A stretch of 64,000 bases of DNA from Selaginella moellendorffii (GCF_000143415.4 NW_003314287.1:68783-132782); one strand, 5' to 3'; shown: positions 43,027 to 64,000, counted from the first letter of the stretch. Notes: a model not told the origin generated them from the letters alone. Numbers and translations are program-made.

Positions 43027-43781
43027 TCACTCTAGTATAGTCGGACGGTCCGGCATTATCCCATCCCTCCAAGGCAGATCGCAAATGCGTCGGTACTTTT
43101 CCGGCTTGATAGACTTTGCCTTAGCCACGACCTCCTTCCACTGTCGCAACACTTTCCCCTCGTCGCCAAACAGCTCGCGCAAGCCCTCACTCACGTAAGA
43201 ATCAATCCCTTCGATGGATACTTCCTCACTTGTGAGCACCTCCACCACTTCATACGGCTGTGGATGGCCCTTGATGGCATCGTAGCCGCAGAAACTCTCC
43301 CGGGGAATCACCTGTATGTGTGTGAGAGAGAGACGCAATGCAAACAAGGGAGTAGGGAGCGTGAGCTTACATGCATTGGCTGGCCTCGCAGCACCACTGG
43401 AAGGGCCCGAGAGATAGCATGGTGGACACCCCACCACGAGTTGAAGACGAGAGTGATCGGGTAGAAGATAGAACCGGTGAGGAAAGAAACGCAACCTTCC
43501 AGCACTTGCTCACTCGACCCGCTTGCTATCTGCACTGGCTCGCTCTCCCACTGGAGCAGCGTGGGATTGTCGGAGACGAGCTGCTGCATGCCACCCGCAT
43601 CCACGCCCAGCATCAAGCACAGATCTGGGCCGGAGCGCGGCGTAGCATAAGCCGACGCAGCGACGGATCCAGCAAGCGCAGCCACTGCTCCATGCTGCGA
43701 CAGCCACGCCGTGAAACCCAACGCCGCATCGACTTGATGATGCCCGTACCACAGGCATTGTGCATCAGACCATTCGGTTAC
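43027..43781 (-). CDS. Pseudo-nucleotidyltransferase (DUF6036/AbiEii-like fold, catalytic residues lost); 5' end unresolved
   Basis: AALAGSVAASAYATPRSGPDLCLML, then ITLVFNSWWGVHHAI, a phase-0 GT-AG intron at 43312-43370, then VIPRESFCGYD..WKEVV. Collinear with the + strand paralog. In-frame TGA TGA at 43782-43787. Confidence 0.65.
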
Positions 43782-44262
43782 TCATCAGCGCTCCTGGCGC
43801 CAGATTTTTGTTGGCGACCAGCACCCCAGCTCCTCAAGCGACATCTCCAGTGCACTTCCTTGGGGACGAACTTGGGTTTGCTGCTTTGCGGCTGCGTAGC
43901 GCAGCGGCCATGATGCCAACATCACGCCAGCTTGAATTTTGTGAGGCTTGTGTGCTAGGAAAACGTGAGCTCGGCAGTCAGCTCAGCTTTTTCCTGAGAG
44001 TGACTAAGGAGGGTTCTTGCGGCATGGCTTCGTCACGGTGCGCGCCCCTGCCCCTTCTGAGCGGATGCTCATCGCTGTCACGAAGCAAGGTAAGCCTCTG
44101 GGCCTTTCATCTGTCTGCCATCTTCTGTTCCTCCAGCTCCCGTTGGATCTGCTCGCGGCTCCTGCTACGATTCACTTCCACACCCTGCACGGCCCGCGCT
44201 CCATCGGAGGTCGAGGAAGGGAGCCGATCCTGCCGTTTTGCGCTCGTCCACGAGTGGAAGCA

Positions 44263-44914
44263 ATGGGCAAGGTTCCGGACCCTCCACGAGTGGAAGCAAT
44301 GCCCGAGGCCGACAAGGTTCCGGACCCTCCACACCGCAAGCTTCCGGACCCGCGACTGCTGAAGGAGGTCCTTGGCATCCTGGAGACTTGGAATCAGGGG
44401 TGTTGTCGCCGGATCCTATGCCGCCATGGCACACTCTGTCTGGAGGACGAGCAAAGACATGGATATGAACATCTCTCTCCAGACGAGCGAGACTGAGCGG
44501 TTCCAAAAGATGGTGGATGAAGTGCAAGATACGCACTGGGTAGAGCGCTTGTCGGGCCCTTTTTATATTTTCTCTGCCTTGTCTTATTTGTTTTTGTCTG
44601 TTGACTTCTTCGATACGTGGTGGGGATCGGCTGAGGCCATTGAAAGCTCAACCTTCAAAGCTATCCCCGAACCAGGAGTTCCACCGGAGCAAGCTGTGGT
44701 GCTCCCTGTAATCCCCCCCGAGTCAATCTGCCTTTTCAAAACCATCAGCCTCGATTTCAACAGGCGTCGTGGTCGAAAGGATCGAACCGACATCTTCAAT
44801 ATTCTGAAGTGCGCCTCTCCGTCCGAGCGCCAGCGGATCAACGACTACCTGGGCAAAATCATTCCCAACAAAGCTCTCTGGCGCGAAGTCATGGTGGAGG
44901 CTGTAGGCTGTTGA
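44263..44914 (+). CDS. Prokaryote-type Pol-beta superfamily nucleotidyltransferase (DUF6036/AbiEii-like), one frameshift at ~44385
   Basis: LLKEVLGILE/RLGIRGVVAGSYAAMAHSVWRTSKDMDMNI (hGS.A...R.S.DhD), third Asp in SVDFF, PVIPPESICLFK, RKDRTDI..IL. Intronless. Confidence 0.75.
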
Positions 44915-45359
44915 GCCATAGGTACGGGTTTCTTTGCTTTTGTGCATTTTCCATCGAGCTCAACCACTGCTCTCAGGTAGCCCGAGGAGCACAGCGTCCT
45001 CCCTTCTCGTTTTGAAGCATGCAGAGACGTCGATCCGCACCTTTTCTTTTTGTTCCATCTTGTAGAAATGCTCCTGCGGAAATGCGCAAGTTCATTTTGC
45101 AATGATCTCTGGCTCCGCGCTCCTCTTGACAGATTCAAAGGTGACGAACTGGCTCGGAGGGGAGGACGTTCCAGTCTCGAGGACACAAGGTTGTTCCACT
45201 ACTGCCGCTCCAAGATCCAAAACAGGTGAGCTCAACCAAATAGGTGATGTTTTTTGAGAAGCAATTTGTTTGAGATCCACTTCTATGAATGAGTTTATGG
45301 ATGTTTCATGAATGGCAGAACGAAATTAGTTTCACAATTGCATCTTTGTCATTTTTATT

Positions 45360-46918
45360 TTAAAAGTGAAAGAGAAAACCTTCAACATCCACTAATGTGG
45401 CATTGGTACCAGAGTGGTCTACATCAACAAAAAGGAGCTGGCAGCGGTGTTGTCTACCTAGTGCGAGCGTCCCACGCCTTGACAAGCTCCAGCAGCGCAC
45501 TCTGTTCGTCTCGGTTGGATGGTAGCACTCTAGGAAGCGCTGGCGTGGACTCACACGCGAACATCGCGTTGTAGAGAGCAAGTTCCTGCCAGGAACCACG
45601 TCAAGTCAGTCGAGGGGGGAGGGTAAAGGGAGAGGGAGAGGGGAGAGCCACCTTTGATCCAGCAGTAATCTTCACTTGCACATGAATCCTTTGTTCACCA
45701 CTGCACTCCTCCTCGGGCTCCGTCCGCATGACGAACGCTTCCAGCTGCACAGAAGTCCCGAGCTTGGCCTGGACGCACAGAGGATTAGCACCAGGAAGGA
45801 ACAAAGAAGTCAAGCTCACTCACCCCCTCCAAGAACTTGACGTGATATATGTGCTTGAGCCGTGGTCTACTGCGGCCGTGGCCAAAGCGCGCGGCAAAGC
45901 CATATGCAGTGCACATGGCCAGCCCACAAGCTTCAGCCAAGAGCTCCCCCCCAAACACTGATCCCTGCGAGTTGAGCTGCTGAGGCTCCACCACAAAACA
46001 CGTTTGGTGTCGAGTCCTCTGGATCAAGACAGCACTAGCATCATCCTTGCTTCCCGCCGCCAGCAGTTGCCGCCCCTCGTCGAGCATGCATCCCACAAGT
46101 TGCTGCCAGGCTCCAGGCGCGGCGTGATGATCGTGGTGATTATCCACATCCACGCGTCTGGCTTCAAGAGCGTTCACCCGCGCTGGCTTGCCAGTTATCC
46201 TGTCGCGGGCCACGAAGACGAGGCCAGCCTCCAGGGCAGTAGCTTGGTGCTGCACAGCTTGGATGTGAACGTGGAGGGAGCTGCGGCCGGCTCGTTGCAC
46301 TGTGCCAATGAGCTCCACGTCCACATCGAACAGGAGCGGCTTGTGGATGACCAGGCCATCCAAGAGTACCGTCAAGAACACAAGCGGCCTCGAGGTACCT
46401 TCGTCTCCGAGGCAATGCTGCAGCACAGCCAAATTAGCGGTAGCTTGGAAGAGAGATAGATATGGCGATCTCACCTTGCGGCAGACGTGCCCTCCCAGGC
46501 AATCCATATCTTTGAGCAGCCTCGCCATGCTAATCTCCTGCATGTGGTCCTGGTAGTGGAGCTGGAGGAGCCTGTCCGTGGCCAAGGGGAAGTGGACGCT
46601 CACACGCCCGTCTTGCACTGATCGCCGCGGCAACGAGAGCTGGGAGGCGGCCAGCGAGTCGAGGCGAGTGAAACAACCGTCGCCTCCTTCCCCGCCACCC
46701 TCAGCAGGCCAGTTGATGAGTCCCAGCGAGTCGCGAGCTGCGGGCCTGGAAGCCAGCCACTTCCACTGCTCCACGGTCACGGGGGATACGTACAGACTGC
46801 CTGGGAACAGCGCCATCGGCATCTTCTGCTGGTAATGCTGCTGGCGCTGCCGTGGCGGCGGCGGCGGCGGGGGCACCAACAGCGCCGGATGACTTACCTC
46901 CTGTATGCTCCCCGCCAT
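45360..46918 (-). CDS. Double hotdog acyl-CoA thioesterase (plant ACOT9-like); ends uncertain, possibly degenerate
   Basis: ALFPGSLYVSPVT resembles plant LWPGMYHSPVT. ARLLKDMDCLGG, GRSSLHV, VFVARD..TGK.A.VN, PQQLN.QGSVFGG.L, VKFL. Short introns. Confidence 0.8.
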
Positions 46919-47339
46919 CACCGGTTTAGGGCCGACCACAAAGCTGGATGGTTATTCATTGAAGGGTTACAAGAAGTTCCCTATCCCTCCATTGACAAGC
47001 TCACCGCTTTCTCCGCTTCCTCTCGGGCAGTCAGATCTCACGCTAGCGCGCCGGGCATGATCCTGGCCAGATTGAATTTCGATATAAGCATGAGTCGCTC
47101 GCTACCAGTGAGCGGAAAGAAAACAAAAAATCTCGAGCTTGATGCTTGCCTGATATTTTCTTGTGGTGGCTCCGGCTCACTCACTGAGCAAAATCCTTTG
47201 TTACCCCCTTGGAAGAGAACAAAGACATACTTTGCCGATTGTGTAGAGATCGCTGTTGGTGTTCCCCTGAAAAACCAAGGACAAAAATAAAATAAAATAA
47301 GAGCTGTCGAGGGACATCCAAGCCGCTCGAATGCAACTG

Positions 47340-48252
47340 CCTGGAATAGTTACATCCAAGCCGTCTAAATGCAGCTGGATGTCCGGATGTTAACGGAATT
47401 TCCCGAGGCGTGCTCATGAGCTCTATGGTCTGGCCGTGACAACAAGCACACTCCACCTTTGTGTTTGATCCCCGAGACGATGCCATCGCAAGAACGTGGG
47501 AAAGTGTTGCACGCTTTGGCATTAGTGACCTGTGCGCACTCCCCACGATGCTGATCGCGGGCATGAAGTACCCCATCCCCACGGGCTCTTTGGGAACACT
47601 CAAACGTATCTTCTACGGGGGCGATGCATTCCCTGAGCGACAGGAGATCGAGTCTCACCTGGCACCCGTGCGCCTGGTACAGCAATACGGGATGACGGAG
47701 TGCGGCCAGATTTCCATGGGAACCACGGCAAACGCGGGCTACCTCCTTCCAGGGATCGAGGCGAAGGTCGAGTTCAACGGTGTGAAGCTTTACCCCGGAG
47801 AGCAGGGCCGTCTCTGGGTGAGGGGAGACGGCGTGGTCACTACTGTGCGTGGCAAGGATAGGTTTGCGGACACGGGGGACATTGGATTTTTCGACTCGGA
47901 CAACCGGCTCCACCTAGTTGGACGTGAAAAGGACATCACCAAGGTCAAATGCAATCAGGTTCCGTGCTAGCTGCTGGAGGCCATCGCGCTCCAGTGTCCG
48001 GGAGTCCGAGAGGTTGCAGTTGTGGGCAAACCAGAGCGAACCTACGGTCACGTTCCCGTGGCATTTGTCGTCATGGATCCACCCAGGGATGCCAACGCCA
48101 TCATTGCCTTCGTCGGGAAGCTTGCACCAGAGTGGTACATGCCGATTCACGACGTCATCTTCGTCCCCGAGCTGCCAAGGACGCCCATCACTGCCAAAGT
48201 CATAGCGTACACTGTTGAAAACCATACAAAATGCAAAGGAAAAAGAAATTGA
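47340..48252 (+). pseudogene. C-terminal half of an ANL-family acyl-CoA synthetase, intronless, with premature stops
   Basis: YGMTE (A5), DTGDIG (A7), GREKD..K (A8), LPRTP..KV (A10). In-frame TGA at ~47438 and TAG at 47968. No P-loop seen upstream. Confidence 0.85.
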
Positions 48253-50422
48253 ACAAAGGATTCATGTGCAAGTGAGCACGTCCTTACTCTCTACAGCGCG
48301 ACGTTGGTCCACTCCAGCGCTTCCTAGAACCGAGACGAGCAAAGTGAGCCGGTGGAGCTTCTCACGCTCGCACTCGGTAGAGAACATCGCTGCAAGCGCC
48401 TTTTTGTATGCGCTCAGCTCAACGCCAGGACACTTCCCAACGTGCCTCCAAACTCTCCGACCGATTCAGTCTCCATAACGCTGCGCACCTTGAGCACCAT
48501 CTCCTCGCCTCTTTCCGTCACCGCCAGCAGCGCCTAAGGGACAGTCTGCTGGATGGCTCATGCTCGATCTGAGAAAGATCGCGATGAATGAGAGAGCGGC
48601 GATCACAAGAAACTTATGTTCAGGACATCGTTTAATCAAACAGGTTTGCAGTGCTGCTCCGGGGAACGAACTGGTGCTGGAGCGGTAAAGATTGCTGTCG
48701 ACATGGTTGGCGAAAGGCTTGTGGACCAGCGCCTTTTTACCATTAGTTTTTTTATTTCGATGACCGTTGAAATAGGTTTTTGGAGGCGGAATTAAAATGT
48801 AGATAATCTAATTTTATACCTTACAACCTTGAACAATTAATTTTAGGTCGAAAATGGTAATGATAACCACTTTATTGCTTGTGCTTAACTAAGAACACAC
48901 ACAAACAAATGGGGGAGAAGATCATTTGGAAAGTTTTCAAAGATGATTATATGTTGTACCTTGGTCACCCCAAAACCTCACTTGGACTAATCATAAGCAT
49001 ATAGAATATTGCTTCTCCAAGTGGAGGTCCTCCTAGCATCACTCATAAATATCATATAATCATTGACTACAGCTCCACTGGGAAAAGAATTATCACAAAT
49101 AGTTGGAAATTTTTTTGACTAGAATCCAGAGCTAATCCCAGTCACCACCACTGATCATCATCTCAAGAACACAGTGTTTAGTTTCAAAGATTCCAAAGAT
49201 GTGTTAAATTTTTAACTATCAAAGCACAAATAAAAGTGTATCTATTTAGATAATAAGCGCATAATAATAAGTATAACAAAATTTTATTCTTCGCTCAAAA
49301 TTTCAATTATGGAAAAATTACTCTATAATACCTAATATTTTTTAATAGCACTATAGAATCTTTAATAATGTTTTTTTTTGTTATGTGTGTAAATACACAA
49401 TGTTTTAACATGCTCTATTTGAGTGAAATATTATAATTCCAACTTCACAATGCTATAGATGGCATGGTTCTACCAACAAGGAAAATCTAATGTACTATCA
49501 AAGTTTATTTATTATCCATCAACTTTTCTTGTAAAGGGTGATTCTTATGTTTTTGAATTTTTCTCAGGTTCTTTACAGCTTAGATCAAGATGCTCCACCA
49601 CCTCCTAGTAGTGATCGAGAATAGTTTGAGACAATCATGTGCCACTACTCAAGCCTCGTCTACTATCATAATTTTCTTGTGCATCGTGGTGAGGTAGATT
49701 TTATTCCAATTGTCAAGCTTGGACATATTGTCCTCACCTTATGGCAATGACTCATCCCTATTGCCTTTTTTTCATCCTTTCTCCCTCATTGCATCCCGAT
49801 GTGCTTCATATGCTTTCTTCTTCACCTGCTAAGTACCACACAGCATGTTACCTGACACCCACCATCTAACAAAAACGTTGCGTAAAGCAGTGTCAAAGCT
49901 GTCCGATCCCTTGTTACCAATGTAGACACAGTAGGATCGGAGTGGAGAGACAGTGGGTAATCACGTGGAAACATTTGTTTTCTCTTTTCATTGTGGGAAC
50001 ATATGTTTTTTTAGGGAAGGCTGAGTAGCACTGGGATGTGGTGCAATTTGTTCCTGATACTCTATTTTCTTTTATCTATAACAAGTCTAGCTCCTCTGTT
50101 TATGTAAATTGAAACCATTACCTTATTGTTAAATGCCCAACTTGCATTTATATTTTCCACACTATTAGACTTTCATACGCAGATCATAACCACCATTCTG
50201 GGTGATTCAACAATAGCCACACTGACAAGTAGATCTAGAACAATAGCTTGATCTCATTCAAGAGATACACAAGGCCGTCTGGAGCTAGTCCCCTTGCCAC
50301 TGACTGTAAAAACATCTATCTTTATATATGATATACATTATGATATTAATTACAGATTATTCTAATCTATATAACTTCACTTATTTATGTTGAGTCTACA
50401 TCTTGATGAGCTTTGATATACA

Positions 50423-61408: not shown

Positions 61409-62366
61409 NNNNNNNNNNNNNNNNNNNNNNNNNNNNNNNNNNNNNNNNNNNNNNNNNNNNNNNNNNNNNNNNNNNNNNNNNNNNNNNNNNNNNNNNNNNN
61501 NNNNNNNNNNNNNNNNNNNNNNNNNNNNNNNNNNNNNNNNNNNNNNNNNNNNNNNNNNNNNNNNNNNNNNNNNNNNNNNNNNNNNNNNNNNNNNNNNNNN
61601 NNNNNNNNNNNNNNNNNNNNNNNNNNNNNNNNNNNNNNNNNNNNNNNNNNNNNNNNNNNNNNNNNNNNNNNNNNNNNNNNNNNNNNNNNNNNNNNNNNNN
61701 NNNNNNNNNNNNNNNNNNNNNNNNNNNNNNNNNNNNNNNNNNNNNNNNNNNNNNNNNNNNNNNNNNNNNNNNNNNNNNNNNNNNNNNNNNNNNNNNNNNN
61801 NNNNNNNNNNNNNNNNNNNNNNNNNNNNNNNNNNNNNNNNNNNNNNNNNNNNNNNNNNNNNNNNNNNNNNNNNNNNNNNNNNNNNNNNNNNNNNNNNNNN
61901 NNNNNNNNNNNNNNNNNNNNNNNNNNNNNNNNNNNNNNNNNNNNNNNNNNNNNNNNNNNNNNNNNNNNNNNNNNNNNNNNNNNNNNNNNNNNNNNNNNNN
62001 NNNNNNNNNNNNNNNNNNNNNNNNNNNNNNNNNNNNNNNNNNNNNNNNNNNNNNNNNNNNNNNNNNNNNNNNNNNNNNNNNNNNNNNNNNNNNNNNNNNN
62101 NNNNNNNNNNNNNNNNNNNNNNNNNNNNNNNNNNNNNNNNNNNNNNNNNNNNNNNNNNNNNNNNNNNNNNNNNNNNNNNNNNNNNNNNNNNNNNNNNNNN
62201 NNNNNNNNNNNNNNNNNNNNNNNNNNNNNNNNNNNNNNNNNNNNNNNNNNNNNNNNNNNNNNNNNNNNNNNNNNNNNNNNNNNNNNNNNNNNNNNNNNNN
62301 NNNNNNNNNNNNNNNNNNNNNNNNNNNNNNNNNNNNNNNNNNNNNNNNNNNNNNNNNNNNNNNNNN
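61409..62366. other. Assembly gap (N run)
   Basis: Continuous Ns. Confidence 1.
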
Positions 62367-64000
62367 GTATATTGGATAGACCACAAAAATGTTTTTAGTT
62401 ACATAAAAAACACATATAAAAAACAAAGAAAATCAAGTATTATTGCATAGTTCAATATATTATTTTGAAATTTCACTTTAGTTTCTGCATTTTTACTTCC
62501 TTATTGTTTTATTCATATACTATTTACATAGCCTTAAAAAGCATAATAGAAGGATCTAAATAAGTTACTTATATGATTATTTTAGTTATGTGTTGGATAA
62601 TGTTCTTTGTACCCTGCCAATTAATTTAGCTAACATAGAAATTATAGTCATCATTGCAAAGAAAAAATTACATATAATTTCAAGAAGAATATATATAATT
62701 AATTTGGGTTCTTATCAATTTTTTATATGTTACACTTGCTTTAATTGTGTATGGTTAATTTATGATTCACACTAAATTTTTATTCACTCTTTTTTATCTA
62801 TATAATTTGTAAAGCTCTTATTTACCCTTCTAAAGTTACATGAACTTAATCAAATGCTCATAATATTTATTATTATTCACATTGTCTTTCACAAATTTTG
62901 ATTTATAACTTTTACTACTTACTCAATTTAAATGGTAACACTAGAAGGAAATATATAATATATATAAAAATAAATTTTTATGCTTTTTATTGTTGCAACA
63001 CTTGGTTTTCTTATGTAATTTAGTATTATATACAGTTTATTATGATTGATGCAGCCAAACCTAAATAATTATGTTTTAGAAATTTTTTACTACAATTTAA
63101 ATTATTTTATTTGCTAGAGTGAATCTTTGATTTCTATAATTTCTCATATTATACATTTGCAATTTAAGAACCATGAAATATAAAAATAATTCTAACCTTC
63201 AAGTGGAGTATTATCCTTATTAATGAGGCCATTACTTTTTATATACTTGATACATTTTTTAAATGATTTTTATATTAGTCTTTACACTCTCATCACTAGC
63301 AATGTCAATTACTCTTGGATCAATGAATCCACAACTACAAAAGAAAATAAAAGGAAAAGAAGTAATAAAAAATTTTAATGTCCTTAACAAAAAAACTTTA
63401 TAATTAGAATTATCCCACTTTTTCTACTTCCTACATCCAGAAACTTTTATCTTGTAAATTAAAAAAATAAAGAATCAAGACACAAGGGTAAATAACATAC
63501 TTATAAGTTTCAACTATCAAATTTATCTTATGCAATTCCTAGGAACTTCAAAGAACAATTCAGAAAATTACCTTTCTTATTGTCATATTGAGGCATGTGA
63601 TCATTGTGGCTTCTAATGCCACAACTTGTATCACCTCTATCACCATCAACATCAATATCCCCACAAAAAGTATAAGCAAATTTTGCTATAAATTCTATAG
63701 CATGTTGGATTATATGTCACTCTATCCTTTGCCATGATCTTGGCTTTCAAGGTCATTGTCCAATATATGTACTTTGGAACTTGAAGAGGCTATAACACTT
63801 TTAAGAGCTCTAAACTTTTGCAGACTTGGTTGATGTGGTCTTGTTGTTGCTAAAAACAAACATTAAACATGAATAGTAGTCAAATTAGAAGTATCTTCTA
63901 AATTAAAAATATTCTGAAAAGGAATATGTGCTCCTAAATGCTAGATTTGAGTTACTATTTTAAATGAAGGAGTGCAATTCTAATTTTTGTTCTCCCAGGA

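Follow-up and report, generated by a model that had tools for sequence, protein, structure and literature searches.

The spikemoss Selaginella moellendorffii carries two divergently oriented paralogs, at 43027-43781 (-) and 44363-44914 (+) of a 64-kb window (the whole stretch of DNA analyzed, 64,000 nucleotides), which are probably old, divergent copies of a small nucleotidyltransferase (NTase) of the AbiEii/MenT1/DUF2204 type, one now a pseudo-enzyme (the minus copy) and the other a disabled enzyme (the plus copy), on a sparse eukaryotic branch. The two proteins would be NTases of about 180 to 230 amino acids (aa). Their genes are separated by a spacer of ~0.5 kb, and the main features are given in Table 1. 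The core frame of the plus copy is open from 44363 to 44911, and GC content by codon position was gene-like in the plus and minus ORFs alike. Long ORFs were present in several frames of the GC-rich region containing the pair.

TABLE 1 Coordinates of the paralog pair and of its catalytic positions in the window
Feature	Position	Strand	Comment
Minus copy, exon 2	43027-43311	-	94 codons plus stop (43027-43029); C-terminal helical lobe
Minus copy, intron	43312-43370	-	59 nt, GT..AG
Minus copy, exon 1 core frame	43371-43781	-	Open from 43781; includes helix α1 and T105
Minus copy, AGS (G33, S34)	about 43670-43665	-	
Minus copy, D48-L-C50 in place of DxD	about 43625-43617	-	R44 kept
Spacer and 5' regions of both genes	43782-44298	.	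GC-rich
Plus copy, upstream piece, frame 1	44299-44385	+	Possible ATG at 44299; last part is helix α1, DPRLLKEVLGILE
Plus copy, frame break (frame 1 to frame 2)	44383-44390	+	Between helix α1 and strand β1
Plus copy, core	44387-44914	+	175 codons plus stop (44912-44914)
Plus copy, motif I (G9, S10)	44411-44416	+	
Plus copy, family-specific Arg R20 and S22-K23-D24-M-D26	44450-44464 (S22 to D26)	+	
Plus copy, third carboxylate D73	44603-44605	+	
Plus copy, motif III Lys K118	44738-44740	+	
Plus copy, motif IV K131-D-R-T-D135	44777-44791	+	

The spliced minus copy and the plus ORF were 27% identical over 132 aa (E = 4e-5, BLASTP), and the alignment passed directly over the splice junction (MH/VIPRESFC against LPVIPPESIC, with the slash marking the junction). 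In addition, a hidden Markov model (HMM) built from the non-spikemoss homologs only was run on the 1,527 ORFs obtained by six-frame translation of the window and on the spliced minus copy. The plus ORF matched at E = 1.6e-28 (96.3 bits) and the spliced minus copy at E = 3.5e-19 (66 bits), whose exons also matched singly (exon 1, E = 3.6e-8; exon 2, E = 1.2e-7); the next best ORF of the window had an E value of 0.38. Because the model contained foreign homologs only and nothing else scored below E = 0.38, these results, which greatly exceed chance, indicate that both copies are true members of one small family. A preliminary description of this DNA had reported two divergent paralogs with common landmarks, and the identity and HMM scores confirm this. 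A tree of 10 family members lacked resolution, with an AU p of 0.52 for the sisterhood of the two copies. The spikemoss copies and the Symbiodinium proteins have 'AGS' and 'TWWG' in common, a grouping without tree support.

Relatives of the pair were searched for exhaustively by phmmer with the plus ORF as the query against 1.84 billion representatives (E < 1e-3), which returned only seven, the best with an E value of 4.3e-9. Relatives were found in Amoebozoa (transcriptomes of Arcella intermedia and Endostelium zonatum), in Symbiodiniaceae (Symbiodinium necroappetens, S. microadriaticum, and S. pilosum), and in four environmental or unlabelled assemblies, and they carry N-terminal extensions of 50 to 110 aa. 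This search returned no recognizably bacterial close relative, all placeable ones being eukaryotic. No protein relative in other plants was found in it or in further homolog searches, which agrees with the earlier statement that no characterised plant family of this kind was known. Family signature peptides detected no relative in 185,579 prokaryotic genomes (GTDB) or in JGI metagenome contigs, and word-index homolog searches with the plus ORF and minus exon 1 as queries gave no matches. The pair had been described beforehand as prokaryote-type and horizontally acquired. The NTase fold class is overwhelmingly prokaryotic, and to this extent the description holds, but all placeable close relatives are eukaryotic and the prokaryotic genomes gave an empty result, so that the rest of it is not supported. 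The very patchy distribution would fit massive loss as well as gene transfer, either into eukaryotes or from one eukaryote to another. In the literature, we found nothing on an AbiEii/MenT1/DUF2204-type NTase family in plants and no description of the eukaryotic branch.

The Symbiodinium family genes (L005, L006, and L007) are multi-exon, with four or more exons, and the three Symbiodinium loci are single copy, with no second copy, even a degenerate one, in their flanks. A glycogen-debranching-enzyme gene (hDGE_amylase) adjoins the family gene in two Symbiodinium species, and a TLDc-domain gene adjoins the relative on one unlabelled contig (L001). In the 533-aa gene model of S. pilosum (P0014), the NTase seems to have been fused to an unrelated gene model lying upstream. 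In one environmental assembly (L003, 762-1016), the C-terminal part of the relative P0007 is in another frame, reflecting a frameshift or a sequencing error.

The superfamily was assigned by profile, structure, and language-model searches. The window's own NTase proteins lay below the reach of the Pfam models: they had no match at E values up to 10 and hence none to AbiEii (PF08843) or DUF2204 (PF09970), and NCBIfam-style and PADLOC models likewise matched neither copy. The closest relative (P0001, 32 to 33% identical to the plus copy) matched DUF2204 with 27.2 bits over model positions 3 to 167 of 181, above the Pfam gathering cut-off of 20.3 bits. DUF2204 matches were seen in 7 of the 11 family members, although five besides P0001 scored 15 to 18 bits, below the cut-off. 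PF08843 was touched by 2 of 11 relatives (E of about 0.05), the best reaching 14.3 bits against a cut-off of 22.5 bits. The sole paper found to name DUF2204 concerns an unrelated subject, and thus there is no function to transfer from this family. A single-sequence search of the PDB gave noise only, and the best PDB match of the family profile was MenT1 (8an4; E = 0.018), with 149 residues aligned and the catalytic motifs in register. A low-confidence AF2 model of the plus core (pLDDT, 64; pTM, 0.57) also matched MenT1 in Foldseek (E = 1.3e-7; TM, 0.61 to 0.71), followed by a fungal NTase-like antigen, MenT3/TglT, JHP933, LnuA, TM1012, and ANT(2''). In the ESM Atlas, the shape search returned bacterial AbiEii/DUF6036/DUF2204 clusters of 180 to 200 aa with TM values of 0.72 to 0.76 over 175/175 residues, and language-model features placed both copies beside clusters of these three classes (0.94 to 0.96). 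Because four independent sets of results (Pfam, PDB profile, fold, and language model) agree, the placement in the NTase superfamily is supported, and both copies are regarded as NTase-fold proteins of the AbiEii/MenT/DUF2204/DUF6036 class. The NTase fold proposed in the preliminary description was thus recovered, with MenT1 at the top and with the AF2 topology and every Foldseek and ESM Atlas match being of the NTase type.

MenT toxins transfer nucleotides onto tRNA acceptor stems, and a defining trait of MenAT and AbiE systems is growth arrest brought about when tRNA 3' ends are modified in an NTP-dependent manner. To our knowledge, AbiEii and MenT NTases have been studied solely as prokaryotic toxins, with fungal homologues mentioned in passing. 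Four AbiEii/DUF1814 motifs were defined by Dy et al. (2014), who abolished toxicity by mutating each of them and also noted fungal DUF1814 homologues without linked antitoxins (PMC3985639). In MenT1, the substitutions D41A, K137A, and D152A each abolish toxicity, NTP binding is also lost in D41A and K137A, and the toxin is under the control of a protein partner (Xu et al. and a later study; PMC10435456, PMC11375011). MenT1 (Rv0078A of M. tuberculosis; PDB 8an4, 8an5, and 8rr5) was the best match by both family profile and structure and is of like size (about 190 aa) and fold, although its identity to the spikemoss proteins is only 16 to 18%. Its residues T39, R40, D41, and D43 correspond to S22, K23, D24, and D26 of the plus copy, K137 to K118, and D152 to D135. 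In contrast to MenT1, the spikemoss gene is eukaryotic and has an intron, and any activity on tRNA is putative. The gene neighborhoods also differ: MenT1 has a MenA1-like antitoxin and AbiEii (PF08843, the type IV toxin of AbiE abortive infection) an adjacent COG5340 winged helix-turn-helix (wHTH) antitoxin, whereas each spikemoss copy lacks one. No AbiEi/MenA-like antitoxin was found at the locus, where the adjacent gene is the opposite-strand paralog, dead in the case of the plus copy's neighbor, and where Pfam models matched none of the ORFs, whether those of the two copies or those in the spacer. AbiEii is also ~100 aa longer than the spikemoss protein. The fungal NTase-like proteins (PDB 5uvd, a Paracoccidioides antigen) are eukaryotic and of the same fold class; they ranked sixth in Foldseek with a weak structural match (TM, 0.45) and were not among the sequence relatives found, which makes them a separate branch.

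The plus copy has the complete set of family motifs (AGS, R..KDMD, VDFF, LFK, and RKDRTD). All four AbiEii/DUF1814 motifs of Dy et al. (2014) are present, as hG[GS] in motif I, x13 followed by DhD with the family-specific Arg, the motif III Lys, and +DxxD. It likewise carries the hG[GS], [DE]h[DE], and third carboxylate that define the Pol-β-type NTase fold. As judged from its sequence, the plus copy retains every residue needed for NTP binding and toxicity in the AbiEii and MenT1 mutagenesis. Its reading frame, however, is broken. Helix α1 (LLKEVLGILE), found ahead of the G-S strand in all homologs, lies in frame 1 and ends at ~44385, while the core ('LGIRGVVAGS...') lies in frame 2 from ~44387, with a frame 2 TGA just upstream at 44360-44362. 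With an X bridging the break, the plus copy scored 103.7 bits against the foreign-homolog HMM, compared with 96.3 bits for the ORF alone and 98.0 bits for the best of 120 formal models having an ATG and one intron. A 717-nt contig of run X1 (43948-44664) shows no splicing and matches the assembly exactly over the break, with 0 differences and 0 gaps. This independent contig indicates that the break is not an assembly slip of the reference alone. The catalytic plus copy in this accession is therefore most likely a recently disabled gene, the disabling being placed recently because the 175 downstream codons have kept an open frame, their homology, and a gene-like GC pattern by codon position. 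It could still function through splicing outside the RNA coverage, since there are many formal GT-AG introns whose removal would yield an intact product starting at an ATG. Of the single enzyme initially proposed for this pair, the catalytic motifs stand, but the catalytic unit is not supported, as the frame is broken in both the reference and the independent contig.

The minus copy has a different pattern. At the DxD position the first Asp is kept, but Cys (C50) replaces the second carboxylate. The third carboxylate has become Thr (T105, PITLVF), the motif III Lys has become Asp (D143, 'VIPRESFCGYD'), the basic-acidic part of the +DxxD pentad is deleted, and Gly-Pro stands instead of the Ser/Thr-Lys pair at the position of MenT1 T39. 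Only motif I and the Arg are left of the AbiEii motifs. The NTase fold is nonetheless assigned by homology despite the loss of carboxylates 2 and 3, and the structural landmarks WWG..AI and VIP.ES.C are kept, with the W.EV region well conserved. The C-terminal segment of the minus copy is closer to the protist proteins than that of the plus copy. A spliced contig of run X8 skips 59 nt (joint, 43309/43369; ends, CT..AC), which confirms the intron, and the protein alignment of the minus copy with the plus copy and the foreign homologs is continuous over the junction. The minus copy is thus transcribed and correctly spliced. Losses on catalytic positions with the scaffold kept look like the pattern of a pseudo-enzyme, and the retained structural motifs together with transcription and correct splicing point to a pseudo-enzyme rather than random decay. 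It is from this pattern of kept and lost motifs that purifying selection on the minus copy would be argued. The minus copy is also the longest branch of the 10-member tree (2.5 versus 1.45 changes per site), which would be compatible with relaxed constraint as well. Both the spliceosomal intron and the loss of catalytic motifs (DLC, TLVF, and GYD, with no RKD) had been described beforehand and were confirmed here.

The 5' ends of both genes are less well defined by the RNA data, which had a depth of ~10 reads per run in two raw-read runs. No in-frame ATG occurs directly upstream of the core in either copy, and in the minus copy none separates the core from the double stop (TGATGA, about 43782-43787). 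The ATGs at 43911, 43922, and 43844 could be joined to the minus core by several short formal GT-AG introns; none of these introns had read support at this depth, and the sole contig over the minus 5' region (run X8, 43752-43958) is unspliced. RNA reads cover 43803-44470 and 44805-45138, with none in 44471-44804, the body of the plus ORF.

The spacer has several features of its own. ATGs of opposite strands overlap on a palindromic CATG at 43909-43912. The + strand reads ATG ATG CCA..., and either, both, or neither of the ATGs may be used; the - strand reads ATG GCC GCT... and would give the transit-peptide-like MAAALRSRKAANPSSSPRK. Upstream of the plus core, at 44247-44308, 36 nt are duplicated in tandem (88% identical). 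A piece of 34 to 36 nt at 43929-43964 (+), encoding 'LEFCEACVLGK', is identical to part of a Ty1/copia GAG-pre-integrase sequence that is expressed from other places in the genome; the matching of RNA reads and contigs is confined to this piece, beyond which they continue into unrelated sequence on both sides, and its match to PF13976 is weak (E = 0.15). The peptide MMPTSRQLEFCEACVLGK, starting at the ATG at 43910, was considered as the family's N-terminal motif and exon 1 of the plus copy and was rejected, as it is this copia fragment, and the "loose-end" reads there derive from copia transcripts elsewhere. No flanking repeats that would place the pair inside a transposon were found.

Next, we weighed the reading of an old enzyme and pseudo-enzyme pair against its alternatives. 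It is unlikely that the pair consists of two decaying remnants of an old acquisition that yield no functional product, with transcription as noise and ORFs kept open through GC-richness. This would account for the lack of an in-frame ATG directly upstream of either core, the broken frame of the plus copy, the long ORFs in several frames of the GC-rich stretch, the very low RNA depth, and the retrotransposon fragment in the spacer. However, at 27% identity between the paralogs, each copy still aligns over 158 to 194 residues with distant protist homologs without an internal frameshift or stop, and such intact alignments argue against relics because long neutral decay would erase them. The working splice sites of the minus copy intron, the concentration of its losses on catalytic positions while structural motifs were retained, and the gene-like codon-position GC also do not agree with decay.

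A working enzyme and its pseudo-enzyme could instead form a module for immunity or stress under a bidirectional promoter, acting as toxin and inhibitor or as executor and decoy, the plus copy being intact through splicing, another allele, or recoding. The divergent arrangement over about 0.5 kb, the complementary retention and loss of catalytic motifs between the copies, the expression and splicing of the dead copy, the reads on the spacer and the plus 5' region, the formal introns that could remove the TGA of the plus copy, and the regulation of MenT1 through a protein partner (PMC10435456, PMC11375011) are all in line with such a module. We nevertheless consider it decidedly unlikely, mainly on account of the broken catalytic partner. 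The plus copy scores best when read with the frame break (103.7 bits, against 98 bits or less for spliced models), and the contig at 43948-44664 agrees fully with the assembly and shows no splicing. In addition, an AbiEi/MenA-like partner is absent, the three Symbiodinium loci are single copy, and relatives in which linkage could be tested were not found in other plants. A predicted complex of minus exons 1 and 2 with the plus copy scored 0.02, a value that neither favors nor disfavors an interaction, and none of the analyses pointed to physical or regulatory coupling of the two genes. The head-to-head layout itself is real and, on present evidence, specific to this locus.

The locus is plant nuclear DNA, and contamination is very unlikely. 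The window consists of GC-rich genes in AT-rich spacers and also holds a PPR gene, a B-box gene, and a TPM-domain gene; the pair stretch occurs at 100% identity in contigs of runs from several studies that are labelled as this species; and the 59-nt intron of the minus copy is similar in size to the 55-nt intron of the neighboring gene. A contaminant or misassembly from a protist or bacterium, which the protist nearest relatives and the lack of plant homologs might suggest, is extremely improbable in view of these plant genes, runs, and introns, and the region thus passes the contamination check raised at the outset. The neighboring ORF (45785-46939, -) has 384 codons and no Pfam match; its intron (45768-45822, 55 nt, GT..AG) is at the 3' side and is spliced in run X8, indicating an expressed gene. 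A perfect 26-nt inverted repeat, with arms at 45672-45697 and 48250-48275 that are 2.5 kb apart, flanks the region of this gene. GC content is extremely low at 62001-64000 (20.6%, compared with 30 to 58% elsewhere in the window).

Altogether, the pair is best described as part of a sparse eukaryotic branch of a known NTase superfamily, with a pseudo-enzyme paralog, whose function we infer from its relatives. By analogy with MenT toxins, the ancestral enzyme would transfer nucleotides onto RNA 3' ends, as the protist members probably do too. As the catalytic copy is most likely disabled, the surviving product would be the non-catalytic paralog, which may be non-catalytic but still bind a partner or the nucleotide or RNA ligand of the enzyme. 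We give a low probability to the bolder proposal that a domesticated MenT1-like RNA-end NTase and its dead paralog make up a two-gene, self-controlled effector whose natural alleles differ in having an intact active copy. If this were true, the active copy would be kept in check or guarded by its dead paralog, and a eukaryotic toxin-antitoxin or abortive-infection logic would have arisen from a duplicated toxin and not from a separate antitoxin.

The small eukaryotic branch, comprising Amoebozoa, Symbiodiniaceae, environmental protists, and one spikemoss, includes spliced nuclear genes with all catalytic motifs. Should their products act on RNA ends in eukaryotic cells, a class of RNA-tailing or translation-control enzymes new to eukaryotes would be at hand. 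The two spikemoss genes provide a natural contrast between enzyme and pseudo-enzyme, as well as a case for asking how a gene of such patchy distribution reached a land plant.
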